DNA of 64,000 nucleotides, from NCBI RefSeq assembly GCF_018977255.1, contig NW_024704948.1, positions 1-64,000 of the forward strand, given 5' to 3'. This stretch comes from Callorhinchus milii (Eukaryota). Made by a program: the position numbers and the translations under genes. The notes beneath the pieces were generated by a model. It worked only from the letters and a program-made list of their open reading frames with translations, was not told where the DNA came from and searched no databases. This document shows positions 3,232-47,260 of this stretch, piece by piece; positions within the stretch are counted from its first letter, which is position 1, and each line of letters begins with the position of its first letter.

Positions 3232-3450
3232 TATGTCACCTGTAACAGGAAGCAATCTGTTATTGCTGACAAGTCAATTAGTTACAGAAAGGAACCTGAC
3301 AAGTTATCTGAGTTGCAGCTCATGTTATATATGTTTTGGTTCGCCATCTGCTGGTGGATTGCAGCTAAAGCACGTGTACAGTTGGAGACATTTGACAGCA
3401 AATAGTTCACGGCTAATCTTATCTTTCCCAGTTGTGAATGTTTCTGTATA
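3232..3450 (-). promoter_or_regulatory. Repeated intergenic module copy 1 (E-box/ETS plus CTCF-like motif)
   Basis: ACAGGAAG at 3245-3252; CCAGCAGATGGCGA on the minus strand at 3341-3354. Confidence 0.55.
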
Positions 3451-3574
3451 AAAGAAAGTTGTTGTTTTGGATGTACGTCAACTTATTTAAACAGCACAGA
3501 TGGACATGCACACGTGGCGAGACTCCCAAGGAAGCAAGACGTTTGAAGTTATTTATGTGAATGTAGCATTATTA

Positions 3575-3928
3575 TGTTTAATAATGATAATAAAATTCAT
3601 TGCATTAATTCACTTGGAAGAGCGCCATATCTCGTATTCGAGACACTTCAAATCGCTTCACAGAATAGACTGTACACGAGTTGACTGCATATTGTGTGGG
3701 TGAAACGCGGCAGTCAATTGCTCCCATCAGTGTCCCACTGGATTGAATGAACATTTCAGTAATAATATTATTGTTTTGAAGGAATTATTACCGCTGGGAA
3801 ATCGATTCGCCAATCGAATAACAACCGGGTTCCTTCTTTTACTGCTCGTCGAACAGAGTTGTTCGTGGAATAAGGAAACGTGCACAAAGCGAGGCGAATC
3901 CTCTCTCTACTGAGCTACAGGACTCCAC
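3575..3928 (-). mobile_element. tRNA-derived SINE starting ~5 nt from the V2 nonamer (B box deleted)
   Basis: The minus strand reads ACAAAAACT-gtcag-GTGGAGTCCTGTAGCTCAGT. The tail GTGAAGCGATTTGAAGTG..(att)n is near 3580-3660. Confidence 0.75.
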
Positions 3929-3933
3929 CTGAC

Positions 3934-3972
3934 AGTTTTTGTAGGGAGGAATCGCTGATCTGTGCCTCTGTG
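3934..3972 (-). other. 23-RSS of V2
   Basis: CACAGAG-23-ACAAAAACT. Confidence 0.92.
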
Positions 3973-4828
3973 GGGCTCAGTGCACAGTAATACACTGCGG
4001 AGTCTGTAACTCTCACTTGGGATATATTTATGTGAACGGTTGTCTCCGCTTCAGACACGTTCGTTGAGAATCGTTCTTTTGCAAAGTCTGCACGTTGCTG
4101 CTTGTTATTCCTGATGTAGGTATTAAGGATATATTCTGGAGCTTTGTTGGGATAGTGACGGTACCAGAACAGATATGTATCGCTGCCGCTTGTAGCTGTG
4201 TAGTTACACTGCAGATAAACAGCCTCTCCTTCATTCACTGTCACAGTAGATTGGAGCTGTGTCACAGAATCTCCTCCACAATATCCTGTGAACAAGACAA
4301 AAATCAGCGTTCAATACAATAACAACGTTAATAATAATCCTATTCCCTCTATTTGATACGACTCATCGTGTCTTCGAAACATTACAAAGTACTTCACGGA
4401 AAACACTTTAACTGTATTTCTTCGGCCAATGCAGCTCTCAGTTATGCAGCAGCCCTCAAACCGTCGTGGTTTGATTGAATGAATCGTAAACAAAATCGTA
4501 GGGATTTTCCTACCATGAAAATCCATTCGCAAATTCACTTACAACGGATTCCTACAGCTATTGAAACAGAGTCGTGTGTTCGTTGTAACCAAATTCCCCT
4601 GAGGTTTCTCACTGCCCAGGAACCAAACCCAGGTCCTCGCTCTTGCGATGCGAGTGCTATATCAACTGAGCTACAGGACACTATAACGCCACAAGTCCTG
4701 TAGCGTTTTGCTTATCTAATGCAAGAAAATAGGCATTGGACAATATCTGCGGCATAGAGACTTCTTGAGCGAGTTGATGGCTTACCTGACAAGATAACGA
4801 TGGCGGCCACATAGATATACATTGTCAT
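3973..4828 (-). CDS. TCR V gene V2 (family B, YYCALSP)
   Basis: Leader 4786-4828 MTMYIYVAAIVILS with GTAAGC donor. V exon 3973-4285 DSVTQ..LQC..FWYRH..YYCALSP. Confidence 0.93.
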
Positions 4829-6603: not shown

Positions 6604-6642
6604 TGTTTTTGTAAAGGTACCTCTTGGACACACAGCACTGTG
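6604..6642 (-). other. 23-RSS of V3
   Basis: CACAGTG-23-ACAAAAACA. Confidence 0.93.
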
Positions 6643-7099
6643 CCTTCCGCACAGAAGTAAGTTGAGGTGTCTGTCACCAGAAGGTTTTGGATTGTTAGAG
6701 TGCAGTTTCTCTGTCTTGTATTAGCCAAAGCGCTTATCCTGTCCTTCATGTTGATGTCTTTTGTTCCCAAAACCAAGAACCGGATGGAGCCGTTTCCATA
6801 CTGTGTGTACCAATGAAAGGTTGGGCCGGACACAGTGGTGTTGCACTCCATAGACACGTTTCCATCTTCATTCCCTGTCACGGCCTGAGGTGACTGTGAA
6901 ACATCACTTTCAGCCAAGACACCTGGAAAGATAGAACAAATGAACATACTCGCAAAGCAATTAGGAAAGTGTCTGCCGCGATAAACTGTAATTATTTTGC
7001 AGGAAAAAAATATTTTTTATCCAAATTCATGCACTACTTACACCAAAGCTTTATTGTTAAATTCAAAATAATATATGTTGTGCTGAAAATCTGCTTCAT
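6643..7099 (-). CDS. TCR V gene V3 (family C, YFCAEG)
   Basis: Leader 7042-7099 MKQIFSTTYIILNLTIKLW with GTAAGT donor. V exon 6643-6922 (280 nt), open. Confidence 0.92.
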
Positions 7100-9738: not shown

Positions 9739-9757
9739 TCTCAACTGCCGTCGATTC

Positions 9758-9787
9758 NNNNNNNNNNNNNNNNNNNNNNNNNNNNNN
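9758..9787. other. Assembly gap (30 N)
   Basis: N run immediately upstream of the V4 leader. Confidence 0.99.
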
Positions 9788-10544
9788 CTTATCCGGTCGG
9801 GCGATTTGCTGTTTCTAAAGTGTTGTCGTGGCAACAAAGCGCTTCGATGGTGTACCAGTATGTTCTCCACTAATTTGATATATTAATCACATTTCACTGC
9901 TCGTTCCTCCTATTTTCTGTTGGTCCCTGGAACATTCGTGTACAACGTCAGTCACATTCCTTAATTTGACCTTTCTCTGTGCAAACATTTGCTGCCTCAC
10001 TTGCGCACCCATTTTATTTCAATTCCTTGCCTTCGTAGTTCATCGCCAAAACGCTCCCCTAAGTGGAAAGCGCTAAATTGGAATACCAAGAGGCCATTCT
10101 GCTCCTTGAGCCTTTTCCAATGTTAAATTATATCATGGCTGATCTATCCCTCAGCTCGTATTCCCGCCATTTCCCCCAAACGATTGAAATTCGGAGCTAA
10201 AATAAACGTATTCAACTCCGTCTGGAAAATACGAATGGAACCAACATCCCCAACCTCTTTGTGGAAGTTTTCCAGATTTCTTTAAATTTTTCATAATTTT
10301 TTTTACTCATTTTCTCTGCTAACTGGACTGGCTCTAATGCACTCTTTTTCTACATTCCCCCTCCATCCAGCATAAACAGTTTCTCTATAAATAGACGAAA
10401 TAGTTTTTGGGGAAACTACATAAATGGAACTTGTTTATTTTGATGTTTTCTTACTGAATAAAGCAGCATAGAAAGAAACGTGCAAGTGACAGCGTTCCCC
10501 AGAGGCAAGACATTTTTTACATACTACTTGGATGATAACATGAC

Positions 10545-10933
10545 TACAGTTAATAACAATAATAGCAATAACAGTTGCATTTGATATAACGCCGTATCAC
10601 ATCTTCGGGACACCACACAGTGCTTCATAGGATATACCGTAAATGAATTGACTGTATATTGTGAGTGCGAAGCACTGCAGCAAATTGTACACATCGCTAT
10701 CCAAGTGGATGAAGTGCCCAATTTATTATCAACGCTAATATTCCGAAGGAATTGTTATCTCTGGAAAATCGAAACGCCAATCTATTAACAACCTGCTTCC
10801 TACTTACTGCTGGTAACCAGAGACGTGTGTGTGGAATAAGGAAAGTTGCACAATGCTTCGTTCTGCTGGGAATTGAACCAAAGTCTCTCCCTTGTGTGGC
10901 GAGTGCTATAACCACTGAGCTACAGGGTTCCAC
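10545..10933 (-). mobile_element. Full-length tRNA-derived SINE abutting the V5 RSS (A and B boxes intact)
   Basis: A box TAGCTCAGTGG, B box GGTTCAATTCC, core and L2-type tail. Paralogs at ~25685-26073 and ~47895-48283. Confidence 0.8.
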
Positions 10934-10938
10934 ATGGC

Positions 10939-10977
10939 AGTTTTTGTAGGGTGGAATCGCTGATCTGTGCCACTGTG
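10939..10977 (-). other. 23-RSS of V5
   Basis: CACAGTG-23-ACAAAAACT. Confidence 0.93.
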
Positions 10978-11708
10978 GGGCTCAGTGCACAGTAATACCC
11001 CGCGGAGTCTGTAACTCTCACTTGCAATATATTTAATGGGACGGTTCTCTCCGCTTTAGACACATTCGTTGAGAAACGTTCTTTTGCAAAGTCCGCGTGG
11101 TCCTTGTTCCTGTTTTTGGTGGATGTTCTGAGTATATATTCTGGAGCTTTGTTGGTTAAGTGACGGTACCAGAACAGGTAGTCAGAGCCGGTGTTTGCAA
11201 CTGTATAATTACACTGCAGAGCAACATCCTCCCCTTCAGTCACTGTCACAATAGATTGGAGCTGTGTTACACTGTCTCCTCCACAAATTCCTGGAAAACA
11301 TAAAATCAATACCAACAATGAGAATAGTTATCCTTGTGTTTGATACAGAGCCTTATATAATTAGTAGTAGTTCTTTTGAGGGGTTATTAGCCCCGAAATG
11401 CGTTCCATCAATCGACTACGGAAATGGCACGTTCTTAGTGTGGATAAACATGTTCATACATGTGTAGAGTAAGGAAACTTTTCTAAGGTTTCACTGTGTC
11501 TCAACCGGGAACCGAACCAAGTTCCTCTCACTTGGGAGGCCAATTCGCTGTTCGGTGAGCTAGAAAACTCTACGAGGCATGCTTGATTTTGCTTATTTTA
11601 GTCTACAAAACATAAGCATTGGTTAATACTGTCACGAAACACACTGACAGAGCGAGTTTATCGCTTACCTGAAAAGGTAATGATCACTGCTATCACATAG
11701 ATAAACAT
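10978..11708 (-). CDS. TCR V gene V5 (family B)
   Basis: Leader 11669-11708 MFIYVIAVIITFS. V exon 10978-11290, open, ends YYCALSP. Confidence 0.92.
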
Positions 11709-14670: not shown

Positions 14671-15321
14671 AAATAACCAATTCTGGTTGCTGAGTTGCTG
14701 AGAGTATGAGCTATAGCCCTCATCACATCTTCAGGACATCTGAAAGCGCTTCACGGTATCTACAGCAAAGTGTATACATTAGATGAAGTTTCGCAAGAGC
14801 AAAATTTAGGAACCTCTGATTCTGCTTTATGGTAACCCCTGGAGATCAGCAAGCTAAAACTGGGTTAATTTCAAGCGCCTTATCACGTCTTCGAGAAGCC
14901 TCAAAGCATGTTGCCTCATAGGCAATTTACACTATGTGTTGCTTGCGAGACGCGGCAGCGAATTCTACACAGCAGTGAACCGCAAATAGTGGTATATTGA
15001 TTAAACTCTATCTATTCCTTTATGAAGGGAACATTCCCTAGAAAAAAAAATATTCCCAAAATGAGGAACAGCTGGATTCCTACTTACTGCTCGGTAAACA
15101 GAGGCGAGTGGATGGAGTAAGGAAACTTGCCTAAGCTTCCGCCCTGACCTGAAGGGGAATCCAACCCAGGTCCACTCTCTTGTGATGCGAGTGGTATAAC
15201 CACACCAATACAGGACTCCACAGACTCTGTACACCACACTCCCTGTTATAATTGTGGAAACACATCAGTCTGTTCAAACCACGAACTTAAATGTGTGAGA
15301 AGAGGCCATGATTCTCTGCTG

Positions 15322-16177: not shown

Positions 16178-17229
16178 GTTGGCCGCTGAGTTGTGGACAG
16201 ACAATCGGATCTCTTCCTTTGTATATCGCTGTGTTGCTGCTTCAGTGACAAGTTGTGAGGTAGCGGCTGATCTGATGTGTTCATTGGTTTATTACCTCCA
16301 ATTGTAGGCGTTTCCCACTCACCAGAAGTTCTTAAATTTGATCTTCTGGCGATTGGTAGCCAATGGGCCTGGGATTGGATGGGAGCAACGACTTGTCTTT
16401 CACCCACAAAGAATGTACTTTACGTTATATTCTGTGATGCTATTTGAGACGTCTGGAATAGTAATGAGTCGCTGTATAAAGTGCAAAGTCTATTATCATT
16501 GCTGTGATTGCTTTAGTTTGGTTGCTGTTGAACAATGCAGCCCAACCTAAGTAATTGAAGCTTTAATTTCTACCATCAAAGCTGAGGTGAAAGCCTTTCC
16601 CTGTTGATGATAGTTTCTATTCTGAGTCAGAATGTTGTTGGTTCAGGAGACAAGTCGGCACTTTGAGCCCACAGTCTCGACTGAAAGTCAAATACAGGAC
16701 TGTGGGTGGAATGCGTTGTCCTCAAAACTCAGATAAAACCGATCATTGACGTTATGAATATTCGTGGGGAAATTAATGTTTGAATATTGCTTCATATTTT
16801 GGCTCACAACGTGCAGTCACTGCTTCTTACAGAAATGCCATTTAAAGTCTTGGAACCGCCTCCAACGTGAAAAGAGCTGTATTAAAGGCAAGTAATATTG
16901 TTATTGTTAATATTGTTATCGACGGCCAAATCTTCTTATCATTGCAACAAAATAAGGAATCTGCAAACTCAGATACCTAAACCATATTAAACAAAGTCAG
17001 ATTTAATCTTCTTCTGCATTGAAACCGAAACAAGCGAACATAATGCTGCTAACAAAATGAAGCACATTTGTTCCCGAAATGAGAACTATTAAGTGCGGCT
17101 GCTTACTTGGGAGAATGACAATTAAACATAGACTCAGCAATTTAAATTGCTTCTTGAGTAACCTAAGGCCACGCCGTAGGCAAATCTTTGTAAATTGCAG
17201 CTGATCCAGTAACAGTGTATAAGTTGGAA

Positions 17230-17450
17230 GTGTGTCACCTGTAACAGGAAGCACCTGTTATTGCTGACAAGTCAATTAGTTACAGAAAGGAACCTGACAA
17301 GTTATCTGAGTTGCAGCTCATGTTATATATGTTTTGGTGCGACATCTGCTGCTGGATTGCAGCTAAAGCACGTGTACCGTTGGAGGCATTTAACAGCAAA
17401 TAGTTCAAATAGTTAATCTTATCTTTTCCGGTTGCGAATGTTGCTGTATA
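17230..17450 (-). promoter_or_regulatory. Repeated intergenic module copy 2
   Basis: CACCTG-taa-CAGGAAG-CACCTG; GCAGCAGATGTCGC on the minus strand at 17339-17352. Confidence 0.5.
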
Positions 17451-21091: not shown

Positions 21092-21769
21092 TCTCAACTC
21101 TCTTCGATCCACTTCAATATATATCGATGAATTGCAACCAGAAATCATCTAAAGTCAGCGTCTGGTGGATAAACGTTGGTTCACTTGAGACGTTGACTCT
21201 TATCCCCGCGTCATTACTCTGTCTCTGTTCATTGCTGGAGATGTATTGCGACTCCTCCTATCTTTTAAGTTCAGATTCCCTCCGCTTCGCAGTGGCAAAC
21301 CACAGTAATGTGTGAAAGAGACAGTGTAGAGGAAGCGAGTTACAAAGACTGAAGCAGATAAAGGTAAAAATAACAATAACCCATATAACGCCTTATCACG
21401 TCATTTAGACGTCCCAAAGCGCTTCATGGAGTATACTGTAAAGTTAATTGACTGCATAAGTTGTGGGACAGTGCGGCAGATCATTACGCGCATACGTCGC
21501 CCACAAATATTTGTGGCTTGAATGACTTATTTAGCATTTTTTAAGGAAATGTTACCACTGAAATCTATCAGCCATCTGAGTAGCAACCGGGTTACTATTT
21601 ACTCCAAGCCGTGTGGAGTAAGGATAAGTGCCAAAAAATTTGCCCCAATAAGAATCGAACCAATGTCTCTTTCTTCCGAGGCGAGTGCTCTAACCACTGA
21701 GCTATACGTCCAGATGTCCTGAGGAATGAGCCCAGATCTTGATCATAATAATAATTATTAGACAGAGCC

Positions 21770-21990: not shown

Positions 21991-22656
21991 ATGATTATAT
22001 TTATGATTGCATTTGGTAAAGCGCCCAAAAGTGCCATTGGGACGACAGAAAGCGTTTCGCAGAATATGATGTGCAGCGTTATGATGTACAGAGATTACTG
22101 GAGGCGAAACGGGTCGTCTACTGCACACGAGTATTCATATGTACAGGGAACAACTTGTTGTTATTTTTTNAAGGGATTATTAATTCTGGAAAAGCGATGA
22201 GCCAAGAGACTATCAACCGTGTTGCTGCTTCTACGAGATAGACAGAGGCAAAATAACAATTATGTTGTATTATATTATGTATAGCAACGACATTGTGATT
22301 GTGACAGTTGAAACGTGGTCGTCTATTGCACACAAAGAGTAAACGATTGAGCTACCAAACTGTTGTTATAATTTTTAAGGAATTGTTACTCCTGGAAAAG
22401 CGACACGCTGTTGGAATGCCAACCGTGTGCCTGCAACTGATAGGAAGGCAGAGGTATGTGTGTGGAGCAAAGAAATTTACCCTATGTTTCGTCCCACCCG
22501 GGAATCAAACCCAAGACTTCACGCTTAAGAGCTGAATTAGCTAAAGTCAAAACAATATAACACAGGACTCTGTGAGTAAACAGACATAAATGCTGTTTTA
22601 ATTTTACTTGATGCAATGGTTCCCCCTCGCGTTTCAGCAGCAAATGAACCGCTTGC

Positions 22657-22695
22657 AGTTTTTGTACGGTGCCGCCACAGCTCGGCAGCAGTGTG
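22657..22695 (-). other. 23-RSS of V10
   Basis: CACACTG-23-ACAAAAACT. Confidence 0.92.
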
Positions 22696-23471
22696 GGCCT
22701 CTTGGCGCAGTAATACACGGCACTGTCCCCGATCAGGACGTTGGCAATACTCAGTTTGAAATCTTCGTTCGTTTTATCGACTTTGGAGGAAAATCGATGT
22801 TGGAAGTCTGGGCTCTTATTATCCTTCCCTGCAACAGACTGAAGAATGTAGACAGGAGCGTTCCTGGAGGCTTGTCGGTACCAAAACAGACCGTACGCGT
22901 CACTTATTTTCTTTAAGGTGCAGGATAATTTCACATCTTTACTCTCTTCAACTGATATTTCAGCAATCGGTTGATTCCCAATGTCTTGCAGGCTGTTTCC
23001 TGTGATTTAAAAGAAAATATTGTTGAGCAGCAAGTTTGTCTAATATGAAGACTGTAGTGAATTGGTGAGAGCATTCGCCTCAGAAGCAAGAGTTATGTGG
23101 CTTTGATATCAGGACAGGGGAAAGCTGAGGAAATTTTCCCTACTCCATACGCCTTTGTTTCAGAAGCAGTAAATAGGAACACGTTTACAAGTCGATTGGC
23201 GCTTCTCTTTTCCAGGGGTAATTAGCCCTTCAATAATGGATCAATAATGAAACAGATAATAATTTGGTCATTCAATCCATGATTATTTGAAGAAAACTGC
23301 TGTGCACAATCGGCTCGAATAAAGGATTAGGCACTATATCAAATTCAATGATTATTAATATTATAATGCGGTAAAAGTTATAACAAGATATTAGAAAAAG
23401 AAGGTATACAAAAGATACGAACGGTAAAGTAAGCTGAGAGTGATTGAGAGCACAGCACATGTCTCCCACAT
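22696..23471 (-). CDS. TCR V gene V10 (family E, YYCAKRP); weak leader donor
   Basis: V exon 22696-22999 (NSLQDIGNQPIAE..LSC..FWYRQ..YYCAKRP). Leader 23423-23471 MWETCAVLSITLSLLY, with donor GTTCGT where V18 has GTTAGT. Confidence 0.85.
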
Positions 23472-24370: not shown

Positions 24371-24802
24371 CAGAAAAAAATAATCCAATACATATTAGAC
24401 AGTGATCTTTTCAGTCGCATTTCAATGTGTCAGTTGCGGGATGAAATATCACTGTTGTTGTTATACAGTTATATACTATTAAGTTGCTTAATGTTCACGT
24501 TTAATGTAGTTGCCTAACCAAACAGTGAGGAGGGGAGACGTAATTTTTTTTCACACAGCAAGTTATTCCGATCTTGAACGCGTTGCCTGAAAGGGCAACT
24601 GAAGCAGTTACGGTTACAACTTTCAAGAGGGAATTGTTATAACGTAGATAAAACTATTTATTAGCGGCTGCTATTTGGGATGAAGGCAATAACATTCAAC
24701 GTGCAGCATAGAACTTGTTTCTTGAGCAACCTAAGCATTGTATGAATACTTTAGGCAAATATTTGTAAATTTCAGTTGAAATAGCAATAGTGGAAATGAG
24801 TG

Positions 24803-25020
24803 AAATATGTCAACTGCAACAGGAAGCACCTGTTACTGCTGCAAAGGAAGTTAGTTACAGAAAGTAACGCGACAAGTTATGTGAGTTGCAGCTCATGTTC
24901 TATGTGTTTGTTTAATGCGCCATCTTCTGGTGGGTTGTAGCTACAGCACGTTTACAATTGGAGGGTTTTCACAACCTAACTATTTTGGGCCCGTCTTGCC
25001 TTTCCTTGGTGCTATGTTCT
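24803..25020 (-). promoter_or_regulatory. Repeated intergenic module copy 3
   Basis: CAACTG-caa-CAGGAAG-CACCTG; CCAGAAGATGGCGC on the minus strand at 24917-24930. Confidence 0.55.
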
Positions 25021-26078
25021 CCACTGTAAATTGATATATTAGTCACATTTCCCTGCTCGTTACTCCTATTTTCTGTTGTTCCCTGGAACCTTCGTGTACA
25101 ACGTCAGTCACATTCCTTAATTTGACCTTTCTCTGTGCAAACATTTGCTGCCTCACTTGAGCACCCATTTTATTTCAATTCCTTGCCTTCGTAGTTCATC
25201 GCCAAAACGCTCCACTAAGTGGAAAGCGCTAAATTGGAATACCAAGAGGCCATTCTGCTCCTTGAGCCTTTATGTCATGGCTGATCTATCCCTCAGCTCA
25301 TATTCCCGCCATTTCCCCCAAACGATTGAAACATCTGACCTAAAATAAATGTATCCAACTTCGTCTGGATAATAGGAACGGAACTAACATCCCCAGCCTC
25401 TTTGTGGAAATTTTCCAGATTTCCTTAAATTTTTCATAATTTTTTTTCTCATTTTCTCTGCTAACTGGACTGGATAATGCACTTTTCTTCTACATTCACC
25501 AACCAACCAGAATAAACAGTTTCTCTATAAATAGAGGAAATAGTTTTTTGGGAAACTACATAAATGGAACTTGTTTATTTCGATGTTTTCTTACTGAATA
25601 AAGCAGCATACAAAGAAACGTGCAAGTGACAGCGTTCCCCAGAGGCAAGACATTTTTTACTTATTACTTGGATAATAACATGACTATAGTTAATAACAAT
25701 AACAGCAATAACAGTTGCATTTGTTATAACGCCGTATCACAACTTCGAGACGCCACACAGTGCTTCATAGAATATACCGTAAATGAATTGACTGTATATT
25801 GTGAGTGCGAGGCACTGCAGCAAATTGTACGCATCGCTATCCCAGTGGATGAAGTGCCCAATTTATTATCAACACTAATATTCCGAAGGAATTGTTATCT
25901 CTGGAAAATCGAAACGCCAATCTATTAACAACCTGCTTCCTACTTACTGCTGGTAACCAGAGACGTGTGTGTGGAATAAGGAAAGTTGCACAATGCTTCG
26001 TTCTGCTGGGAATTGAACCAAAGTCTCTCCCTTGTGTGGCGAGTGCTATAACCACTGAGCTACAGGGTTCCACATGGC

Positions 26079-26117
26079 AGTTTTTGTAGGGTGGAATCGC
26101 TGATCTGTGCCACTGTG
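26079..26117 (-). other. 23-RSS of V11
   Basis: CACAGTG-23-ACAAAAACT. Confidence 0.93.
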
Positions 26118-26927
26118 GAGCTCAGTGCACAGTAATACCCCGCGGAGTCCGTAATTCTCACTTGCAATATATTTAATGGGACGGTTTTCTCCGCTTTAGA
26201 CACATTCGCTGAGAAACGTTCTTTTGCAAAGTCCGCGTGGTCCTTGTTCCTGTTTTTGGTGGATGTTCTGAGGATATATTCTGGAGCTTTGTTGGTTAAG
26301 TGACGGTACCAGAACAGATATTCAGAGCCGGTGTTTGCAACTGTATAATTACACTGGAGAGAAAAATCCTCCCCTTCAGTCACTGTCACAACAGATCGGA
26401 GCTGTGTTACACCATCTCCTCCACAACGTCCTGGGAACCAGAAGTAGAATGATAACAGTAATAATAGCGATTCTTATATTTGATACAGAGCTTTTTCATG
26501 TCGTTAACTTGTCACCAAACATTTCACAGAATATACTGTCTCTGTGCATTTTGGGGGCGAAACATGTGACCGCATTGTTATTAGTCATTGTTTTTTTAAG
26601 AGATTATCAGTCCCGAAATGCGATCCATCGATCGGCTAAAAAAAGGCACTTACTTACTAATTGGTAAAGAGTTACATGTGCGTAGAGTAAGGAAACTTGC
26701 CAAAGGTTTCACTGTGTCTCAATGGGGAACTGATAACAGTTCCTCTCACTTGCGAGGCCGATTCGCTGTCCAGTAAGGTACAGAAATTTACGGTTCATTT
26801 CAACTGTTTGTTATATTTGTGCAATAAAACATATGCATTGGATAATACGGTCAGGAACCAGAATGATAGAGCGAGTTTATCGCTTACCTGACAAGGTAAT
26901 GATCACTGCTACAACATAGATATACAT
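26118..26927 (-). CDS. TCR V gene V11 (family B, YYCALSS); chimeric
   Basis: Leader 26888-26927 MYIYVVAVIITLS, V exon 26118-26430, open. Confidence 0.92.
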
Positions 26928-28088: not shown

Positions 28089-28509
28089 TCTCCACTGCAC
28101 ACAAGTAGGTGGCGGCGTCTGTCACTTCTGTGCCTGTGATGCTCAGATTACTGCCCTTCTCTCTATAGTTCATTGTAGCTGTGATCCTCTCCTTCTGCGG
28201 CTCTCCCGACTGTCCTCTTACCAAGTGTTTGAGGGCCTGGTTCGGATACTGTCTGTACCATTGTAATGCCCGCGATTGTGTTGTGAAACAGCTGATAATT
28301 ACTTCTTCCTTCTCCCCAACAGTCACAGAGAGTGGCGACTGGGAGACTGTATCCTGACCACTGACACCTGGTAAACACAAAACAATTTGTTTGTGAAACT
28401 CACCCATTAATTTAAGTAGAATTACATACAATTTCTGTAAAGCACACTCACCCCAGAGGGTCACGGCAGCTTTCAGGAGCAGGAACACTAAAGCGTAATC
28501 GCACTTCAT
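28089..28509 (-). CDS. TCR V gene V12 (family D, YLCAVET); chimeric
   Basis: Leader 28452-28509, 84-nt intron, V exon 28089-28367, open. Confidence 0.92.
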
Positions 28510-28688
28510 AACGAATCTTTCAGCGCTTTGATGAACAAATGCAAGTTTCCTTTGAAAGCTTAATCAACTTTCCTCACTCCACACGCCTCTGTTTACAGAA
28601 CACGAAGTAGGAATCCGATAGTCAATTGGCGAATCGCTTTCAAAGGATAATTATCCCTAAAAAAAATGGGACTCGACCCGTGACTGTT

Positions 28689-30519
28689 CCAGTCAGGAAC
28701 CTCGGCGTTTTGTTCGACCCTGAGCTGTCCTTTCTCCCTCACATCCGCACTACAACTGGCACCGCCTTCCATCACCTTCGGAACATCGCCAGCCTACGGC
28801 ACTACCTCACCCCTCACGCTGCTGAAACCCTGGTCCACGCCTTTGTCACCTCAAGGCTGGACTATGGGAACTCTCTCCTCGCCGGCCTTCCCGCCACCTC
28901 CCTCCACAAGCTGCAGGTCATCCAGAACTCTGCAGCTCGTGTACTGTCCCGCACCAGACACCGCGACCACACCACACGCACCCTCGCTCGCCTCCACTGG
29001 CTCCCCATCCCCCAGAGGATTGATTTCAAGATCCTCATCCTCACCTACAAGGCCATTCACGGCCTTGCTCCCTCCTACCTCTCCAACCTACTATCACCCT
29101 ACCTACCTGCCCGTACCCTCCGTTCCTCTGGCTCTGGTCTGCTCCACGTCCCCCGCCCCAACCGCCCTACCATCGGTGTTCGGGCCTTCAGCCTCTCAGC
29201 CCCCAGGCTCTGGAACTCCATCCCCAAGTGCCTTCGCCTTGCTTCCTCCCTTTCCTCCTTCAAGGCCGGTCTCAAAACCTTTCTCTTTGACCGTGCCTTC
29301 AGCTCCACTCTCGACTCTCTTCCCCTCCTCGCTCCCTCCCTTCCCTCCCCTCACCCTGACCATTTCCCCCTCCTTGCTCCCTCCCTTCCCTCACCCTGAC
29401 CTTTGGGCACCCTGGACGAGAGACAACTTTCTTCAGCTCAACGTGCGAAAAACCGAGGCCATCCTGATTGGCTCACGTCAGCGCCTCCGCACCTCAGGCG
29501 CTGACACCATCAGCATCCAAGGCTGCACTCTCGACCTCTCAAAGCCAGTCAGGAACCTTGGCGTTTTGTTCGACCCTGAGCTGTCCTTTCTCCCTCACAT
29601 CCGCACCACAACTGGCACCGCCTTCCATCACCTCCGGAATATCGCCAGATTACGGCACTACCTCACCCCTCACGCCGCTGAAACCCTGGTTCACGCCTTT
29701 GTCACCTCAAGGCTGGACTATGGGAACTCTCTCCTCGCCGGCCTTCCCGCCACCTCCCTCCACAAGCTGCAGGTCATTCAGAACTCTGCAGCTCGTGTAC
29801 TGTCCCGCACCAGGCTTCGCGATCACATCACTCCCACCCTCGCTCGCCTCCACTGGCCACCATCCCCCAGAGGATTGATTTCAAGATTCTCATCCTCACC
29901 TACAAGGCCATTCACGGCCTTGCTCCCTCCTACCTCTCCAACCTACTATCCCCCTACCTACCTGCCCGTACCCTCCGTTCCTCTGGCTCCGGTCTGCTCC
30001 ACGTCCCCCGCCCCAACCGCCCTACCATCGGTGGTCGGGCCTTCAGCCTCTCAGCCCCCAGGCTCTGGAACTCCATCCCCCAGTGCCTTCGCCGCTTCCT
30101 CCCTTTCCCCTTCAAAGCCGGTCTCAAAACCTTTCTCTTTGACCGTGCCTTCAGCTCCCCTCTCGACTCTCTTCCTCCTCCTCGCTCCCTCCCTTCCCTC
30201 CCCTCACCCTGACCATTTCCCCCCTCCTCTCTCCCTCCCTTCCCTCCCCTCACCCTGACCATTTCCCCCTGCTCGGGTCATGACCCAACTGTGCAGCGCC
30301 TTGGGACGTCCTCCTGACGTGAAAGGCGCTCTATAAATGGAATCTTGTTGTTGTTGTTGTTGTTGTTTTCCCCCCTCCTCGCTCCCTCCCGTCCCTCCCC
30401 TCACCCTGACCATTTCCCCCCTGCTCGGGTCATGACCCAACTGTGCAGCGCCTTGGGACGTCCTCCTGACGTGAAAGGCGCTTTATAAATGGAATCTTGT
30501 TGTTGTTGTTGTTGTTGTT
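28689..30519 (+). mobile_element. Composite L2-clade LINE insertion (three tandem 3' fragments)
   Basis: RT C-terminal motifs NFLQLNVRKTE, VRNLGVLFD, SRLDYGNSLL, LQVIQNSAAR and LHWLPI. The tail GTGAAAGGCGCT..AAATGGAATC(TTG)n occurs at ~30320-30366 and ~30470-30519. The insertion is absent at the paralogous site ~13655. Confidence 0.92.
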
Positions 30520-32172
30520 TGATTGTCTCTGTTTTGTCCAATCGTTGCTATGATTTCGACCATACAATACGCAGTCACTACACTTTACAATTTATCTTGT
30601 GAAGCGCTTTCACATGCCTTAGACATGATTTAAATCGCTGTATAAAGAATCAAGTATTGTTATGATAGTCACAAGTAGGCAGGACGAGGTATTCAGTGGA
30701 AGACCCTGAGTGTGTGCGGGCGAGTACTCTATGTGTTGGCATCGAGTCCTCGGGGGCAGGTGTCAAGTTGATAATAAGTTGAATCGAGCCATTGCGAGGG
30801 TTCAAAGCGAAAGAGGAGGAATCACGTAATATCAGCAGTTTCTCAGATGTCTCTCCCCCAATTAGTTGAAAGTTTCCTTCCGGTCCATTTCCGCTCTATG
30901 CATCTGGATTTCACAAGTTTAGGGACAGATCACAATTATTTCTGGCATAATTCATTACTGCAAGTTTTTTTTCCTCTGCTGTTTATTTCGCTGAATGACA
31001 GGTCATAAATTAACATTTATTTTTGTTAAGCTGGTGTCTGGAATATGTGGATACCCATCAACATGATTACGATTATCCCAAGTAACCTGAGAGATATAAT
31101 AATGATCCATGTTTTTGATATAGCGCCTTACTCGCCTCTTCGAGACGTCCAAAAGCGCTACACAGGTTATTCTCTCAAGTGTAGTGAGAGCGTATTATAT
31201 GGGGGAAACGGAGCAACGAATTGCACTTATCAGTGTCATACAAAACTGTGGCTGTTAGAGCGACAATATTTTTAAAAACATCGATTTTTTATATGTTTTT
31301 TATTATTCATTTTCTTGCGTTCAAACTACAACTGGATTTTTCCATGNNNNNNNNNNNNNNNNNNNNNNNNNNNNNNNNNNNNNNNNNNNNNNNNNNNNNN
31401 NNNNNNNNNNNNNNNNNNNNNNNNNNNNNNNNNNNNNNNNNNNNNNNNNNNNNNNNNNNNNNNNNNNNNNNNNNNNCTCTCTCTATCTAAATATCGATCT
31501 CTCTCAGGCACACAAACACACAATAATCAATTCTGGTTGCTGAGTTGCTGAGAGTATTAGCTATAGCCCCTCATCACATCTTCAAGACACCTGAAAGCGC
31601 TTCACGGTATCCACATCAAAGTGTATACATTAGATGAAGTTTCGCAAGAGCAAAATTTAGGAACCTCTGATTCTGCTTTATGATAACCCCTGGAGATCAG
31701 CAAGCTCAAACTGGGCTAATTTCAAGCGCCTTATCACGTCTTCGCGAAGTCTCAACGCATGTTGCCTGATAGGCACTTTACACTATGTGTTGTTTGCGAG
31801 ACGCGGCAGCCAATTCTACACAGCAGTGAACCGCAAATAGTGGTATATTGACTAAACTCCATTTATTCCTTTATGAAGGGAACATTCCCTAGAAAAAAAA
31901 ATATTCCCAAAATGACGAACAGCTGGATTCCTACTTACTGCTCGGTAAACAGAGGCGAGTGGATGGAGTAAGGAAACTTGCCTAAGCTTCCGCCCTGACC
32001 TGAAGGGGAATCCAACCCAGGTCCACTCTCTTGTGATGCGAGTGGTATAACCACACCAATACAGGACTCCACAGACTCTGTACACCACACTCCCGGTTAT
32101 AATTGTGGAAACACATCAGTCTGTTCAAACCACGAACTTAAATGTGTGAGACGAGGCCATGATTCTCTGCTG

Positions 32173-33030: not shown

Positions 33031-34082
33031 GTTGGCTGCTGAGGTGTGGACAGATAATGGAATCTCTTCCTTTGTATATCGCTGTGTCGCTGCTTTAGTG
33101 ACAAGTTGTGAGGAAGCGGGTGATGTGATGTGTTCATTGGTATATTACCTCCAATTGTAGGCGTTTCCCACTCACTAGAGGATCTTAAATTTGATCTTCT
33201 GGCGATTGGTAGCCAATGGGCATGGGATTGGATGGGAGCATCGATTCGCCTTTCACCCACAAAGAATGTACTTTACGTTATATTCTGTGATGCTATTTGA
33301 GACGTCTCTAAAAGTAGTGAGTCGCTGTATAAAGTGCAATGTCTATTATCATTCCTGTGAAAGCATTAGTTTGGTTGATGTTGAACAATGCAGCCCAACC
33401 TAAGTGATTGAAGATTTAATTTCTACCATCAAAGCTAAGGTGACAGCCTTTCTCTGTTGATGATAGTTTCTATTCTGAGTCAGAATGTTGTTGGTTCAGG
33501 AGACAAGTCGGTACTTTGACCTCACAGTCTCGAATGAAAGTCAAATACAGGACTGTGTATGGAATGTATTGTCCTCAAAACTCCGATAAAACCGATCATT
33601 GACGTTATGAATATTCGTGGGGAAATTAATGTTTGAATATTGCTTCATATTTTGGCTCACAATGTGCAGTCACTGCTTCTTACAGAAATGCCATTTAAAG
33701 TCTTGGAACCGCCTCCAACGTGAAAAGAGCTGTATCAAAGGCAAGGATTATTGCTATTATTATTATTGTTATCGATGGCCAAACCTTCTTATCATTGTAT
33801 CAAAATAAGGAATCTGCAAACTGAGATACCTAAACCATATTAAACAAAGTCAGCTTTAATCTTCTTCTGCATTGAAACCAAAACAAGCGAACATATTGCT
33901 GCTCGCAAAATGAAGCACATTTGTTCCCGAAACGAGAACCATTAAGTGCGGCTGCTCACTTGGGAGAAGGACAATAAAACATCGAATGAGCAATTTAAAT
34001 TGCTTCTTGAGTAACCTAAGGCCACGCCGTAGGCAAATCTTTGTAAATTGCAGTTGATCCAGTAACAGTGTATATGATGGAA

Positions 34083-34300
34083 ATATGTCACCTGTAACAG
34101 GAAGCAATCTGTTATTGCTGACAAGTCAATTAGTTACAGAAAGGAACCGGACAAGTTATCTGAGTTGCAGCTCATGTTATATATGTTTTGGTTCGCCATC
34201 TGCTGGTGGATTGCAGCTAAAGCACGTGTACAGTTGGAGGCATTTGACAGCAAATAGTTCACGGCTAATCTTATCTTTTCCCTTTGCGAATGTTGCTGTA
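34083..34300 (-). promoter_or_regulatory. Repeated intergenic module copy 4
   Basis: CACCTG-taa-CAGGAAG; CCAGCAGATGGCGA on the minus strand at 34193-34206. Confidence 0.55.
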
Positions 34301-38004: not shown

Positions 38005-39102
38005 GTTGGCTGCTGAGGTGTGGACAGATAATGGGATCTCTTCCTTTGTATATCGCTGTGTTGCTGCTTCAGTGACGAGTTGTGAGGAAGCGGCTGATCT
38101 GACGGGTTCAGTGGTTTACTGTCTACATTTGTAGGCGTTTCCACTAACCAGTGGATCTTGAACTCGATCTTCTGGCGATTGGAAGAGAATGGGTCTGGGT
38201 TTCGATGGGAATATTGCCGCAAATATCATACAACAACAATTTGTTTTACAGTTTAATGAGTGAATCGATTTGAGGTTTCCTCAAGACGTGATCAGGCACT
38301 ATGTCAAATGACAACTTTATTTTAATTTTAACTATTATTATGGTGAATGCATTTATTTAGTTGATGAATCGTTGAGCCATGCAGCAGAGCCTAAAGGAAT
38401 AAGGTTCTGTTTCTGTCATCAAGTCTGAGGTGACAACTTTTCCGCTTTTCATGTTAATTTCTCTTATGAGGATCTTGAACTTGATCTGCCGCGGATTGGA
38501 AGCCAGTGGGTCTGGGCGAGTTTGCGAGTAGAGCGTTTCACCCAATAACAATTTGCTTTACTGTGCATTTGTGAAGCGCTTCAGGACGCCTTCGAGACGC
38601 AGTATGGCTCTATATCAAATGAGTAAAGGGCATTTTTATTTTCAATACTGTTCTGAATGCATTCGTTTGGTTGATCTTGAACCATGCAGACTAGCTTTAA
38701 AAAAGGTTTACTTTCTATCAAGGCTGAGTTGAAAACCGGCATCTGTTATTGGTACATTCTCCTATGTGTCTGAATGTTGTTGGTTCTGGAACCAGATCGG
38801 CAGTTTGAGCTCCCAGTGTATCAGAGATTGCGTTTCAATTCTTACATTAAGTTAAACGAGGTCAGTTGTAATCTCGTTTTCAAATTAAACAAACATAAAT
38901 GACCATATTGCTCATAACAAAATTTACCACAATTTTTATCTCAGTGAGATCCACATGAGGGCGAATGCTTCTCGTAGAGAAAGACAACACATCCAAAAAG
39001 TGACACAAACACTGTTCTTTGAGTAATCTAAATTTTGTGCCAATCATGTTTTACACAAGGTTTTTACACGTCAGCTGAAGCAGCTGACATGTATGTCAGG
39101 AA

Positions 39103-39300
39103 CTATGTCAACTGCAACAGGAAGCACCTGTCGGTTACAGAAAGGAACGTGACAAGGTATGTCAGTCGCAGCTCATGCTTTATATTATTTTTAGTGTGAC
39201 ATCTGCTGGTGGAATGCAGCTACAGCATGTGTACATTTGAAGACGGTTGATTGCAAATTATTTTCGGCCCGTCTTAACTTTCCCGCAATGAATGTCGCTA
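39103..39300 (-). promoter_or_regulatory. Repeated intergenic module copy 5
   Basis: CAACTG-caa-CAGGAAG-CACCTG; CCAGCAGATGTCAC on the minus strand at 39196-39209. Confidence 0.55.
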
Positions 39301-42452: not shown

Positions 42453-42907
42453 CTCTCCGCACAGAAGTAAATGGCGGTGTCTGATATTCGCACATCTTCG
42501 ATTGTAAGCGTACAGTTTTTCTGTTTTCTCTCAGCCAAAGCTCTTATCCTGTCCTTCAAATTTACGTCGCTTTTTCCCAAAACCAAAATCGAATGGAGCC
42601 TTTTCCATGTTGTTTGTACCACTGGAAGAAAGGGTTGTTCACAGTGGTAATGCATTCCATAGAAACATTTCCATTTTCATTCACTGTCACGGCTTGAGGT
42701 GTCTGTGAGACATCGCTTTCAGCCAAATCACCTGGAAAATAATAATAAAAATTCTTGGATAGAAATTCAGAAGTTATCTACCAACGTTAATTTGGAATTA
42801 TTTAGCAGGAAAACAACTGAGCCTTTGTCAGAACTCGCACGGTACTTACACAGTAGAAATAATATCAGCTTCAAAATAATATATTTTGCTTTGTAAGTCT
42901 GCTTCAT
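42453..42907 (-). pseudogene. TCR V pseudogene V17 (family C, CAES subtype), 1-nt frameshift
   Basis: Leader 42850-42907 is intact. V exon 42453-42731 is 279 nt against 280. It reads ATTCGATTTTGG where V4 reads ATTCGGTTCTTGG (deletion near 42585-42588). Confidence 0.88.
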
Positions 42908-44558
42908 TCTTAATTGTCTTCGATTCACGTCAATATGTTCGGTTGAAATGAAACGACAAATTATCAAAATGTAGCGTCTGGTTGATAAACATTTATCCAG
43001 TGGAAGAGTTGTCTCTTATCCCCGCCTCATTGTCTTGTCTCTGTTCATTGCTGGAGGTGTATTACGACTCCTCCTACCGTTTATGTTCAGATTCCCTTCC
43101 CCTCGCTGTCGCAAACTATAGTAAAGGGTGAAAGAGGCAGTGCAGACAGACCTAGTTACAAAGACTCAAGGAAATATAAAATTATAATAATAATAATTCT
43201 TGCATTTGATGTAGCGCTATCAGCTCTTGGATGCGTTTCGAAATGTTTTACAGAATATAAAATAAATTTTAGAGTGAAGCTGGGCAGGCAGTTGCGTACA
43301 GCAGTGCATCGCAAACAGTCATTGAATAAATTACCAATTTATCACTTTTTTACGGTATTATTGCCCCGGCAATCTGTCCGCTATTCGACGAATAACCGGG
43401 TTCCTATTTACTGTTCGGTTAAACAGAATCGTGTGGAGTAAGGAAATTTGCACAACGTTTCGCAATGATGAGAAGCGTAACCTTGTATTCTGGTCGCGAG
43501 TCGAGTGTTCTAACCACCAACTTGTAGGAGCAACATGTACTTTGGCAAAGTGCCAAGATTTTGATAATTGGTAGACTATAGGAATAGTGTACGAAGAATC
43601 TTGTGATTAAGCGAATGAACTCAAAAGTTTCTCTGGATTCCGTAGAAAACAGGTTTAGAATACTTTCGGATATAAGGAAGAGGTTTTCCAGTAATAGTGG
43701 GAGCAGAACAGTCAGAGAATCATGACATACTCTTACGTTGTGTCGACTGATCGCCTACAATTTGTAATCAACTTTGTTTCCAATACTCTGCGTTTCGAGT
43801 ATATTTGTGATTCAGAATGCAAAGTGCAACCAAGCAATGGGATGCGGTTGACAACCTGCTGAAAATAATTAGAAATGGGGAACAGAAACATGCTTTATTG
43901 AACCATTTTTCGCAGGCTTTCAAGCCAGTGATGTCTGGTCCAAATATCAGCTAACCAGTGTCACCCAGTGTTCAGGGAGGGAAATATATTTGTTACTTTG
44001 AATTCATAAATGTTTTCATTTGGTACCATGCCATACCTTACCAGGACGTTGAGACGTCTCATTTGCTTTGCAGAATATACAGTACAGTCTTGCGATTTTG
44101 TAATTTTAGGGGTGAAAAGTGATAATATATTACCCACAAACATTTACAGATTGAGAGAACACATTTTATTTTCAATGAATTGATGCTGCTTGAAAAGCCA
44201 TCCACCAGTCGACTTACAAATCGTGTTCATATTACTGTTAGGTATATAGAGGCGCAAAGAATGTGGAGCAAAGAATTTAGGCCACTGTTTAATCCCATCC
44301 GAGAATCGAACCCAGGTCTTCTTGCTTGCGAGGTAAATACTCTAACCTCCAACGAATGACTACAGGACTTTCGACATGTTCCACTCTAATTTATTAGGAT
44401 GATCATGTTTTAAGTGCAGCTTGCATTATAAAAGAATAAACAATACTTTTTCATGCGTCTCCAAATGCTTGACCGGTTTTCTCTATATTTAAACAGATAT
44501 AAAGTCAGTTTTATGCAATGGCGCCCACTGGCGTTTCAGCAGCAAAACAACCATTTGG

Positions 44559-44597
44559 AGTTTTTGTACGGAGTCGCCATAGCTCGGCAGCAGTGTG
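44559..44597 (-). other. 23-RSS of V18
   Basis: CACACTG-23-ACAAAAACT. Confidence 0.92.
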
Positions 44598-45373
44598 GGC
44601 CTCTTGGCGCAGTAATACACGGCACTGTCCCTGATCAGGACGTTGGCAATACTCAGTTTGAAATCTTCGCTCGTTTTATCGACATTGGAGGAAAATCGAT
44701 CTTGGAAGTCAGGGCTCTTATAATCCTTCCCTGCAACAGAGTAAAGTATGTAGACAGGAGCGTTTCTGGAAGCTTGTCTGTACCAGTGAAGATCGGTGGC
44801 ATCACTGATTTTCTTTAAGGTGCAGGATAATTTCACATCCTTTCCCTCTTCAACTGGTATTTCAGCAATCGTTTGATTCCCAATGTCTTGCAGGCTGTTT
44901 CCTGTGATTTAAAAGAAAATATTGTTGAGCAGCAAGTTTGTCTAATATGGAGACTGCAGTGTATTGGTGAGAGCATTCGCCTCAGAAGCACGAGTTATGT
45001 GGCTTTGATATCAGGACAGGGGAAAGCTGAGGAAATTTTCCCTACTCCATACGCCTTTGTTTAAGAAGCAGTAAATAGGAACACGTTTACCAGTCGATTG
45101 GCGCCTCTCTTGTCCAGAGGTAATTAGCCCTTCAATAATGAATCAATAATGAATCAGATAATAATTTGGTCATGCAATCCATGATTATTTGAAGAAAACT
45201 GCTGTGCACAATCGGCTCGAATGAAGGATAAGGCACTATATCAAATGCAATGATTATTAATATTATAATGCGGTAAAAGTTATAACAAGATATTAGAAAA
45301 AGAAGGTATACAAAAGATACTAACGGCAAAGTAAGCTGAGAGTGATTGAGAGCACAGCACATGTCTCCCACAT
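44598..45373 (-). CDS. TCR V gene V18 (family E, YYCAKRP)
   Basis: Leader 45325-45373 MWETCAVLSITLSLLC with a phase-1 GTTAGT donor. V exon 44598-44901, open. Confidence 0.9.
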
Positions 45374-45454
45374 GAGCATCCTGATCCCGTGTCTGACATT
45401 AACTCCCCAATGTGGACTGATGGGGCTTTTGGGCTCAGTAGCCACACAGTTACA

Positions 45455-45870
45455 TCCCCGCCCACACAGAGCCCCACCCACACAGCCACTGCCACGCCCA
45501 CAGAGCCACGTCACTCAGTCACTGCCCCGCCCACACAGAGCCCCGCCCACACAGACACTGTCACGCCCACGGAGCTACGTCACTCAGTCACTGCCCCGCC
45601 CGCACTGAGCCCGCCCACACAGCCACGGCCACGCCCACAAAGCTACGTCACTCAGTCACTGCCCTGCCCGCACAGAGCCGCATCGCCCAATCACTGCCGC
45701 TAATGGACAGCGCCCCGCCCACACAGAGCCCTGCCCACGAAGCCTCTGCCACGTCCACAGAGCTACGTTACTCAGACTCTGCTCCGCCCGCACTGAGCCG
45801 CATCGCCCAATCACTGCCGTTGCATCGCAGCGCCCCGCCCACACAGCGCTCCGCCTCCTCCACTCCCCCC
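45455..45870. repeat. Expanded GC-box minisatellite upstream of the V18 leader
   Basis: Same units as 23540-23760, about twice as long, with at least six CCCCGCCC. Confidence 0.8.
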
Positions 45871-47044
45871 ACAGAAACACACACAGTGCCACACAATCAA
45901 GTCACTCAATCCACAACACTGTATGGGCCAATGTTTTACACAGTTGGCTACCAAGTTTGTCTCCCCCCCATTACAATCTAACGACCCATACAACCCCTCC
46001 CCCCCTCCACCCCACACCCCACAATCTCCCACACCCACAGTGCCGCAAAGTAAGGCAACTCAAACCACAACATTTTGTGGGATATTGCTGTACACAATTG
46101 GCATCAAACAATATAGTCACTCGACTTTTCAGCGTATTCTTTGAAGAGCTTACAGACATCTCAATGGCATAATATGGCAGTATATCAAGTGCAATCTTTG
46201 TTATTATTATCGTTATTATTACAGTGTTGAATAAGACATGCCCTTACGATTGTGTTCATTAACCGGGTTAGAGAAACGCTTTTTTCAAATACAACCTTGT
46301 CATTTGGTCAATACGCCACAAAACTCCTCGTTGGTTTTAATGTCGAGTACAGAGACAGCGAGTTTGTCAACTTGGCACCCAATTTGTGCACAACACTGTC
46401 CCGCAAACAGCTATGAATGAACGACGAATTTTATAGATGGACGTCTGCCCAGACAGCGGTAGAAACCTGCTTATTTCTCGAGCAGTGCAATGGCATTTTC
46501 ATAGTCCCTTCAAACAAGCCGCCTGGACCTAGGTTTAATATTAACTCGGTAGGACGAGCTTCACCGACAATAAAGACAGCCAGGCCTGCTCTAGAGTGTC
46601 AGCCCAGAACAGAATAAAATAATCCAATACATATTACACAGTGATCTTTTTAGTCGCATTTCAATGTGTCAGTTGCGGGTTGAAATATCAATGTTTTTAT
46701 CATGTAGTAATACACCTATTAAATAGCTTAATGTTCACGTTTAATGTAGTTGCCTAACCAAACAGTGAGGAGTGAGACGTAAATTTTTTTCACACAGCAA
46801 ATTGTTCCGATCTTGATCGCGTTGCATGAAAGGGCAACTGAAGCCGTTACGGTTACAACTTTCAAGAGGGAATTGTTATACCATAGATAAAAGTATTTAC
46901 TAGCAGCTGCTATTTGGGATGAAGGCAACAATATTCAACATGCGGCATAGAAATTGTTTCTTGATCAAACTTAGCATTGTATGAATACTTTAGGCAAATA
47001 TTTGGAAATTTCAGTTGAAGCAGCAATAGTGTGTGTGAGTAAAC

Positions 47045-47260
47045 TCTGTCAACTGCAACAGGAAGCACTTGTTACCGCTGCAAAGGAAGTTAGTTACAGA
47101 AAGCAACGTGACAAGTTATGTAAGTTGCAGCTCATGTTCTATGTGTTTGTTAAATGCGCCATCTGCTGGTGGGTTGTAGCTACAGCACGTTTACAATTGG
47201 AGGGTTTTCACAGCATAATTATTTTGGGCTCGTCTTGCCTTTCCTTGGTGTTATGTTCTC
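47045..47260 (-). promoter_or_regulatory. Repeated intergenic module copy 6
   Basis: CAACTG-caa-CAGGAAG-CACTTG; CCAGCAGATGGCGC on the minus strand at 47156-47169, a 14/14 match to CCASYAGRKGGCRS. Confidence 0.6.

Follow-up and report, generated by a model that had tools for sequence, protein, structure and literature searches.

Which variable (V) gene is chosen in the mouse depends on CTCF sites and on local enhancers scattered through the V arrays, and the question raised by the locus considered here is whether this architecture is as old as V(D)J recombination. The locus lies in the elephant shark, Callorhinchus milii (contig NW_024704948.1, positions 1-64,000), and this 64-kb stretch is the window in which all positions are given and to which the motif searches and counts refer. 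It holds six copies of a conserved non-coding block, in which a CTCF-type motif accompanies a composite of an ETS site and E-boxes, and each copy lies in the 3' flank of a V gene of one family, here called X. The preferred reading, held with moderate confidence on the strength of sequence comparisons, is that this block serves as a cis-regulatory module, carried in the 3' flank of family-X V genes in a T-cell receptor (TCR) alpha/delta-type array. Regulatory constraint on the block is likely, and a role as a CTCF anchor is plausible by analogy with the mouse.

The window is part of the elephant shark TCR alpha/delta-type V array, because the family-X exon is a V-set domain, because the recombination signal sequences (RSSs) have 23-nt spacers, and because C. 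milii proteins match at 97-100%. In the database search, C. milii UniProt entries match the family-X exon at 97%, and two further C. milii protein entries match window genes at 100%. The listing of open reading frames (ORFs) together with an RSS scan yielded 22 V-type exons, all on the minus strand, and the arrangement of YxC followed by a CAC-heptamer, a 23-nt spacer and an A-rich nonamer was detected in 21 of the 22 genes, the exception being a family-Y gene (V exon 1363-1782). The letters of the window are all upper case, with five runs of N. The families, named by sequence, are as follows:

Family X: 7 genes, GDSVTQLQS...YYCALSP
Family Y: 4 genes
Family Z: 2 genes
Family W: 5 genes
Family U: 4 genes

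Read in V sense, the observed order is V exon, 23-spacer RSS, a poorly conserved spacer, the CTCF motif with conserved bases beside it, a conserved stretch of ~85 nt, a variable 20-nt linker, and the E-box/ETS/E-box composite. Approximately 300 nt of the block can be aligned, with a conserved core of ~150 nt. Self-BLAST found the block six times only, in a single context and a single orientation, 378-1149 nt 3' of the RSS in six of the seven family-X genes. No copy touches an assembly gap; the gap at 31347-31476, for instance, is in (CT)n-rich sequence, with 2.5 kb between it and the nearest copy. The six cores, assigned to groups A to C, are:

3234-3386, minus strand: core copy 1, group A; alignable block 3141-3443, 580 nt 3' of the X1 RSS (3972-3934)
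17233-17384, minus strand: core copy 2, group A; alignable block 17140-17443, 579 nt 3' of the X3 RSS (17969-17931)
24808-24962, minus strand: core copy 3, group B; alignable block 24708-25020, 1149 nt 3' of the X4 RSS (26117-26079)
34086-34238, minus strand: core copy 4, group A; alignable block 33993-34295, 576 nt 3' of the X5 RSS (34820-34782)
39106-39241, minus strand: core copy 5, group C, with an 18-nt linker deletion; alignable block 39005-39297, 378 nt 3' of the X6 RSS (39625-39587)
47047-47201, minus strand: core copy 6, group B; alignable block 46947-47259, 1120 nt 3' of the X7 RSS (48327-48289)

The composite is centred on the ETS octamer ACAGGAAG, which is matched 11 times in the window where 2.3 matches are expected. 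Six of these matches, all on the plus strand, lie within the homologous blocks (3245, 17244, 24819, 34097, 39117 and 47058). In every copy the first E-box ends two bases before the octamer; half of the copies have CACCTG at this site and the other half CAACTG. The hexamer that abuts the octamer on its other side is an E-box in four copies (three with CACCTG, one with CACTTG), whereas two sister copies, after a one-base insertion and a substitution, have CAATCT there, which is no E-box. In V sense the flanking E-boxes read CAGGTG/CAGTTG. The composites are:

3237-3258, plus strand: composite copy 1, E-box CACCTG, 2 nt, ETS ACAGGAAG, second E-box lost (CAATCT)
17236-17257, plus strand: composite copy 2, E-box CACCTG, ETS ACAGGAAG, E-box CACCTG
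24811-24832, plus strand: composite copy 3, E-box CAACTG, ETS ACAGGAAG, E-box CACCTG
34089-34110, plus strand: composite copy 4, E-box CACCTG, ETS ACAGGAAG, second E-box lost (CAATCT)
39109-39130, plus strand: composite copy 5, E-box CAACTG, ETS ACAGGAAG, E-box CACCTG
47050-47071, plus strand: composite copy 6, E-box CAACTG, ETS ACAGGAAG, E-box CACTTG

The octamer matches at 55453 and 62573 are unrelated to the blocks. Three others, on the minus strand, fall inside the 23-nt RSS spacers of family-Y V genes (15344, 32195 and 37181).

Conservation of the two-part CTCF motif extends from lamprey to human (PMC5504073), and the mammalian motif should therefore apply to C. milii. Scoring used an approximate version of the JASPAR MA0139.1 count matrix, so that the bit scores are approximate. 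The six copies score 18.1, 17.2, 17.2, 15.7, 15.3 and 11.1 bits, which amounts to a strong match to the vertebrate CTCF core motif in five copies and a weak match in one, and the five best position weight matrix scores in the 64 kb (15.3-18.1 bits) all belong to block copies. The minus-strand core in the blocks, CCAGCAGATGGCG(A/C), fits CCASYAGRKGGCRS with 0-1 mismatch in five of six copies. This 14-nt consensus, allowing at most one mismatch, has eight matches in the window as compared with 0.56 expected, five of which are block copies, all on the minus strand. Copies 1-6 have 91, 90, 93, 91, 74 and 93 nt between the end of the octamer and the 15-nt CTCF match, which shows 0, 2, 1, 0, 1 and 0 mismatches, respectively, the short spacing in the copy at 39117 being due to its 18-nt deletion. 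All six motifs are in V-sense orientation, a uniformity that is observed directly and results from the origin of the copies by duplication. The CTCF-type 19-mers are:

3339-3357, minus strand: CTCF-type 19-mer copy 1, 17.2 bits, core CCAGCAGATGGCGA
17337-17355, minus strand: CTCF-type 19-mer copy 2, weakened to 11.1 bits, with G to T at the second G of the core GG and a change 5' of the core
24915-24933, minus strand: CTCF-type 19-mer copy 3, 15.7 bits, core CCAGAAGATGGCGC
34191-34209, minus strand: CTCF-type 19-mer copy 4, 17.2 bits
39194-39212, minus strand: CTCF-type 19-mer copy 5, 15.3 bits, core CCAGCAGATGTCAC
47154-47172, minus strand: CTCF-type 19-mer copy 6, 18.1 bits, core CCAGCAGATGGCGC, perfect to the consensus

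This anatomy bears out much of a first-pass annotation of the same DNA, according to which all six copies keep ACAGGAAG preceded by CA(A/C)CTG (six of six, with two bases between), four carry a second E-box directly after the octamer (CACCTG in three, CACTTG in one), and ~90 nt separate the octamer from the CTCF motif (measured as 90-93 nt in five of six). Its estimate of a ~220-nt module has to be replaced by the alignable and conserved lengths given above.

Other CTCF-like matches in the window have different settings. Both family-Z V genes carry a weak V-sense 19-mer (22617-22635 and 44519-44537, minus strand, 9.3 and 10.1 bits) 21 nt past the RSS nonamer, a layout that recalls the mouse proximal VH CTCF sites. 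Two V-sense motifs on the minus strand, at 905-923 (13.9 bits) and 14830-14848 (10.8 bits), stand ~480 bp 3' of two family-Y RSSs, and the remaining two Y genes have no CTCF-like match of at least 9 bits. Identical 13.4-bit matches on the plus strand (28099-28117, 50307-50325 and 52287-52305) lie antisense in the framework region 3 (FR3) codons (AATYLC) of three family-U V exons, and are most likely a coding coincidence.

The position of the block allows it to be assigned either to the V gene whose 3' flank it occupies or to the next V gene downstream, as it also stands upstream of all four Y and both Z genes. Comparison of groups A and B is informative here. Homology extends from the block toward the X gene (spacer z = 64) and ends at the far edge of the block, beyond which the upstream regions of Y type and of Z type show no relationship to each other (z = 1.2). 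In addition, the identity matrices of the V exons and of the cores give the same grouping, (X1,X5),X3 / X4,X7 / X6. Because homology runs toward the X gene and stops at the far edge, and because the groupings agree, the block belongs to the family-X cassette: it is part of a duplicated unit and has been copied with its V gene. The first-pass annotation was right to place an intergenic element in a TCR locus, given the V-set exon, RSSs, C. milii matches and association with one V family. Its term 'repeat' is not supported in the sense of an independent one, as the homology of the block continues into the flank of the V gene. Since the copies arose by duplication, the motifs that they share are not independent events, and conservation becomes the meaningful test.

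The one family-X gene for which no block can be read is the following:

9859-11318, minus strand: X2, the seventh family-X V gene with its 3' flank; V exon 10920-11318, RSS 10977-10939, assembly gap 9758-9787

In the case of X2, the V exon is 93-95% identical to those of X4 and X7, and the gene and its flank are 93% identical to X4 over 1.5 kb (9859-11354 versus 25013-26494), the homology stopping at the near edge of the block. The expected position of the CTCF core, calculated by offset, is ~9763-9776, which is inside the gap at 9758-9787. To the left of this gap the sequence is homologous to family-W upstream regions, X2 being followed by a W gene, and the 71 nt to its right have no significant match to the block or to the W upstream regions.

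The explanation that survives best beside the preferred one, possible though not favoured, is that the block serves the next downstream V gene, of family Y or Z, as a distal upstream enhancer or CTCF site, rather than serving family X. This would fit the mouse Tcra/Tcrd locus, whose V region has 144 bound CTCF sites, 129 of them pointing to the joining and constant (J-C) segments and many of them upstream of V promoters (PMC5859386). It also draws on the presence of the block upstream of six of six Y and Z genes as compared with six of seven for X, on the steady distance, 996-1113 nt, that separates the ETS site from the following leader ATG wherever a Y gene comes next (four cases), and on X2, where a W gene follows and the block cannot be read. 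However, the homology between groups A and B runs on toward the X gene and stops short of the downstream gene, the grouping of the blocks follows the X exon, and no leader was found for the Z genes, which may be a pseudogene family. The family-Z V exons (22482-22934 and 44489-44836) are themselves unusual in that their ORFs begin within the V domain, and the rule that finds the X and Y leaders finds none for them; they are possibly pseudogenes.

Returning to the block as a module of family X, the evidence that it is more than a by-product of duplication comes from its rate of change, the slower evolution of the core being a direct observation. Between old lineages, of which there are only three, so that the pairwise tests are not independent, the core retains 82-84% identity and the immediate flanks 59-70%. 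The core differs at 15-17% of sites versus 33-38% in the adjoining block columns (p = 9e-5 to 5e-4 per pair), and Kimura two-parameter (K2P) distances are 0.19-0.20 for the core, 0.28 for a neighbouring V intron and 0.40-0.62 for the block edges. In every pair the identity of the core (0.82-0.84) is equal to or greater than that of the V exon (0.79-0.84). By Smith-Waterman local-alignment score per length, the block (0.32-0.45) ranks below the V exon (0.62-0.68) and promoter (0.43-0.60), and well above the spacer (0.11-0.24), the intron (0.09-0.16) and the distal flank. As a control, family-W 3' flanks at equal V-exon divergence align over ~760 nt with a mean identity of 0.72, and 0.17% of their 130-nt windows reach 0.82. 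Among recent duplicates, the core shows 13 changes in 307 columns versus 0.074 per column elsewhere (p = 0.04).

Per-column rates, expressed as parsimony event counts, resolve the block further. The E-box/ETS/E-box composite has 4-5 events in 25 columns, with a 10-nt invariant run, AACAGGAAGC; the 110-nt stretch ending with the CTCF motif has 0.36 events per column, the linker ~1.3, and columns outside the core ~0.9 each. Because the core is slower than its own edges, the V intron and the W-family 3' flanks, and equals the V exon, it is very likely under purifying selection, and from these comparisons the block looks to be selected as a unit.

Several results weigh against this reading, in addition to the small number of old lineages and the dependence among their tests. 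Among recent duplicates the whole ~300-nt block gave mixed results and is no slower than its flanks, and the recent copies include mosaics resembling the products of gene conversion, with stretches that are 100% identical beside others that are 87-95% identical. The CTCF 19-mer shows no extra constraint (~0.34 events per column versus 0.36 around it), and approximately half of its substitutions fall at high-information positions, in three copies; for instance, two copies differ at the second G of GG, one at the Y position and one at a site 5' of the core, and the copy at 17337-17355 is the one reduced to 11.1 bits. Thus, judged by sequence, the CTCF site is strong in most copies, yet it is not singled out as a selected feature. 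Prediction of CTCF sites from motif alone is, moreover, unreliable, and there were no elephant shark chromatin immunoprecipitation (ChIP) data at the time of the study concerned (PMC5504073). That the motifs point to J-C is an assumption, as the J-C end, toward which they presumably face, is outside the window. Observed/expected CpG is 0.47 in the cores versus 0.74 in the window; the cores carry no CpG-island-like signature and, with a ratio below that of the window, no sign of germline hypomethylation. Finally, and with little bearing either way, the nearest non-chimaera relative of the family-X V gene, a bamboo shark gene (Chiloscyllium) with 43% identity and the same heptamer and nonamer, has no homologous block in the one locus available, which is short and gap-filled with a single V gene and long N runs; a strong CTCF motif in the same sense is likewise missing within 2 kb.

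Some of these points are what would be expected if the block were a neutral passenger, that is, DNA of a duplicated cassette with chance motifs, conserved by recent duplication and gene conversion. This explanation, rather unlikely on balance, can appeal to the descent of all six copies from one ancestor, which makes the recurrence of the motifs non-independent, to the conversion-like mosaics, to the unremarkable rate of the whole block in recent pairs, to the lack of extra constraint on the CTCF motif, and to the W-family flanks, whose best 130-nt windows reach 0.80-0.82 identity. It does not readily account for a core that is as conserved as the V exon in every pair when the edges, RSS spacer and V intron are far more diverged. 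Conversion from the V exon would also homogenise the intervening spacer, which is only ~70% identical, and the agreement between core and V-exon groupings means that there is no evident exchange between lineages.

It is improbable that the block is a transposable-element fragment carrying a CTCF site, as with the short interspersed nuclear element (SINE) B2 in rodents, which would be dispersed genome-wide and incidental here. There is precedent in mammals, where CTCF sites have spread by retrotransposition (work cited in PMC5504073). Within the window, however, the copies keep to one context and one orientation, and their homology is not sharp-ended on both sides, as it runs on into the V gene 3' flank. 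When a SINE was considered directly, ARAGORN and Rfam detected tRNA-like heads elsewhere in the window and none in any block copy, in agreement with the earlier statement that the module is not SINE-like. Least probable of all, an unannotated exon or structured non-coding RNA gene can be set aside, as a 95-codon ORF exists in one copy (46981-47268) but none of the frames stays open throughout the six copies, indel lengths are not divisible by three, and RNAalifold found no compensatory pairs in 36 and an unfavourable covariation term, with no Rfam match.

The SINE-like repeat of the window is, by self-BLAST, scattered in both orientations, unlike the block. Its tRNA-like heads occur in varied contexts across the array (1221-1292, 21640-21711, 48208-48279, 54288-54357 and 62893-62963), and one of them lies ~10 nt past the X7 RSS nonamer. 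Other features of the array include a GC-rich (55%) stretch at 28626-30258 on the plus strand, with tandem ORFs for the tails of reverse transcriptases of the long interspersed nuclear element (LINE) type between two V cassettes, where a search of Pfam with a 257-aa piece gave no match, and a local tandem duplication (38153-38437 and 38470-38736, 67% identity) within the X6 unit, upstream of its Y gene. Close by the last V gene on its 5' side, at 58813-59736 on the minus strand, is an intronless ORF for a 307-aa rhodopsin-family receptor (Pfam 7tm_1, E = 1e-10). Mammalian TRA loci are flanked by chemoreceptor genes, which this ORF next to the array recalls.

If the block is a cis-regulatory module, it invites comparison with three kinds of element in the mouse, the first of which was proposed in the first-pass annotation. 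Pax5-activated intergenic repeats (PAIR) of the mouse Igh locus (Ebert et al. 2011, as described in PMC10390877) are, in that description, 470-bp repeats among the distal VH genes that are tied to VH8/VH3609, drive long non-coding RNA, and are bound by Pax5, E2A, CTCF and YY1. Both PAIR and the block are conserved, intergenic, a few hundred base pairs long, repeated among V genes and tied to one V family, and both combine E-protein-type sites, lineage-factor sites and a CTCF site, those of the block being known from motifs alone. The differences are that the block belongs to a chimaera TCR locus rather than to mouse Igh, that it carries an ETS site, no role for Pax5 being expected in T cells, that its core is ~150 nt as opposed to the 470-bp repeat, and that it is 3' of its V gene, whereas PAIR is upstream of its VH8 gene. 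The relation suggested by this comparison is one of analogy, homology not being expected when locus and lineage differ. The description of the block as PAIR-type therefore stands for composition, intergenic position, restriction to one V family and a core slower than its flanks, and falls for independence as a repeat and for extra constraint on the CTCF motif.

The mouse V8E elements, ~200-bp conserved enhancers just 3' of VH8 RSSs (PMC10390877), offer a second comparison. Like the block, they are family-specific, conserved and non-coding, and lie downstream of a V RSS, and in each species the 3' flank of another family is without such conservation (VH1 in mouse, family W here). V8E follows immediately after the RSS, whereas the block is 0.38-1.15 kb away across a poorly conserved spacer, and V8E is defined by open chromatin and enhancer genetics, whereas the block is known from sequence alone. 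The third comparison is with the V-associated CTCF-binding elements (V-CBEs) of mouse Igh, Tcrb and Tcra/Tcrd. Here too the motifs are spread through the V array, approximately one per 9 kb (5.0-14.0 kb apart), and all point in one orientation, matching V transcription. However, CTCF sites of the mouse proximal VH families are within 100 bp of the RSS (PMC5859386), and the block motif is not RSS-adjacent; a strong motif occurs in one of five V families here, as predicted sites; and each motif forms part of a larger conserved block whose ETS/E-box composite lies 90 nt from it. The literature searched on CTCF in combination with elephant shark, with cartilaginous fish or with the TCR loci of C. 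milii yielded no description of an element of this kind, and the earlier statement that it is undescribed holds within that literature and no wider.

As for which factors bind the block, when, and to what effect, we infer the following. During T-cell development the block would be opened by ETS-family and E-protein factors, and it may then provide local enhancer or accessibility activity for neighbouring V genes. CTCF at the adjacent motif would face in the direction of V transcription, presumably toward the diversity, joining and constant (D/J/C) end, and once bound could stall cohesin-driven loop extrusion, keeping the adjoining V RSS close to the recombination centre.

In sum, the block is a conserved, V-cassette-linked non-coding module in a chimaera TCR array, and most likely a regulatory element; membership in the PAIR, V8E or V-CBE classes is not claimed. 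The block offers a small and concrete target in a basal jawed vertebrate, one that evolves as slowly as V exons. If it is not bound, the lesson would be that motif-rich passenger DNA in duplicated cassettes easily mimics regulatory architecture. It can be suggested, tentatively and as a possibility rather than an expectation, that V-array modules in which a CTCF anchor is paired with an ETS/E-protein enhancer, in the same orientation as the V genes, already steered cohesin-driven V(D)J recombination in the ancestor shared by cartilaginous and bony vertebrates. In that event the locus of the elephant shark would retain its own, independent and family-specific form of the logic of PAIR, V8E and V-CBEs, and X2, with no readable block, and the near-identical X4 and X7, with one, would constitute a natural experiment on V usage. 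Binding of the block would push V choice guided by loop extrusion back to the origin of jawed vertebrates.

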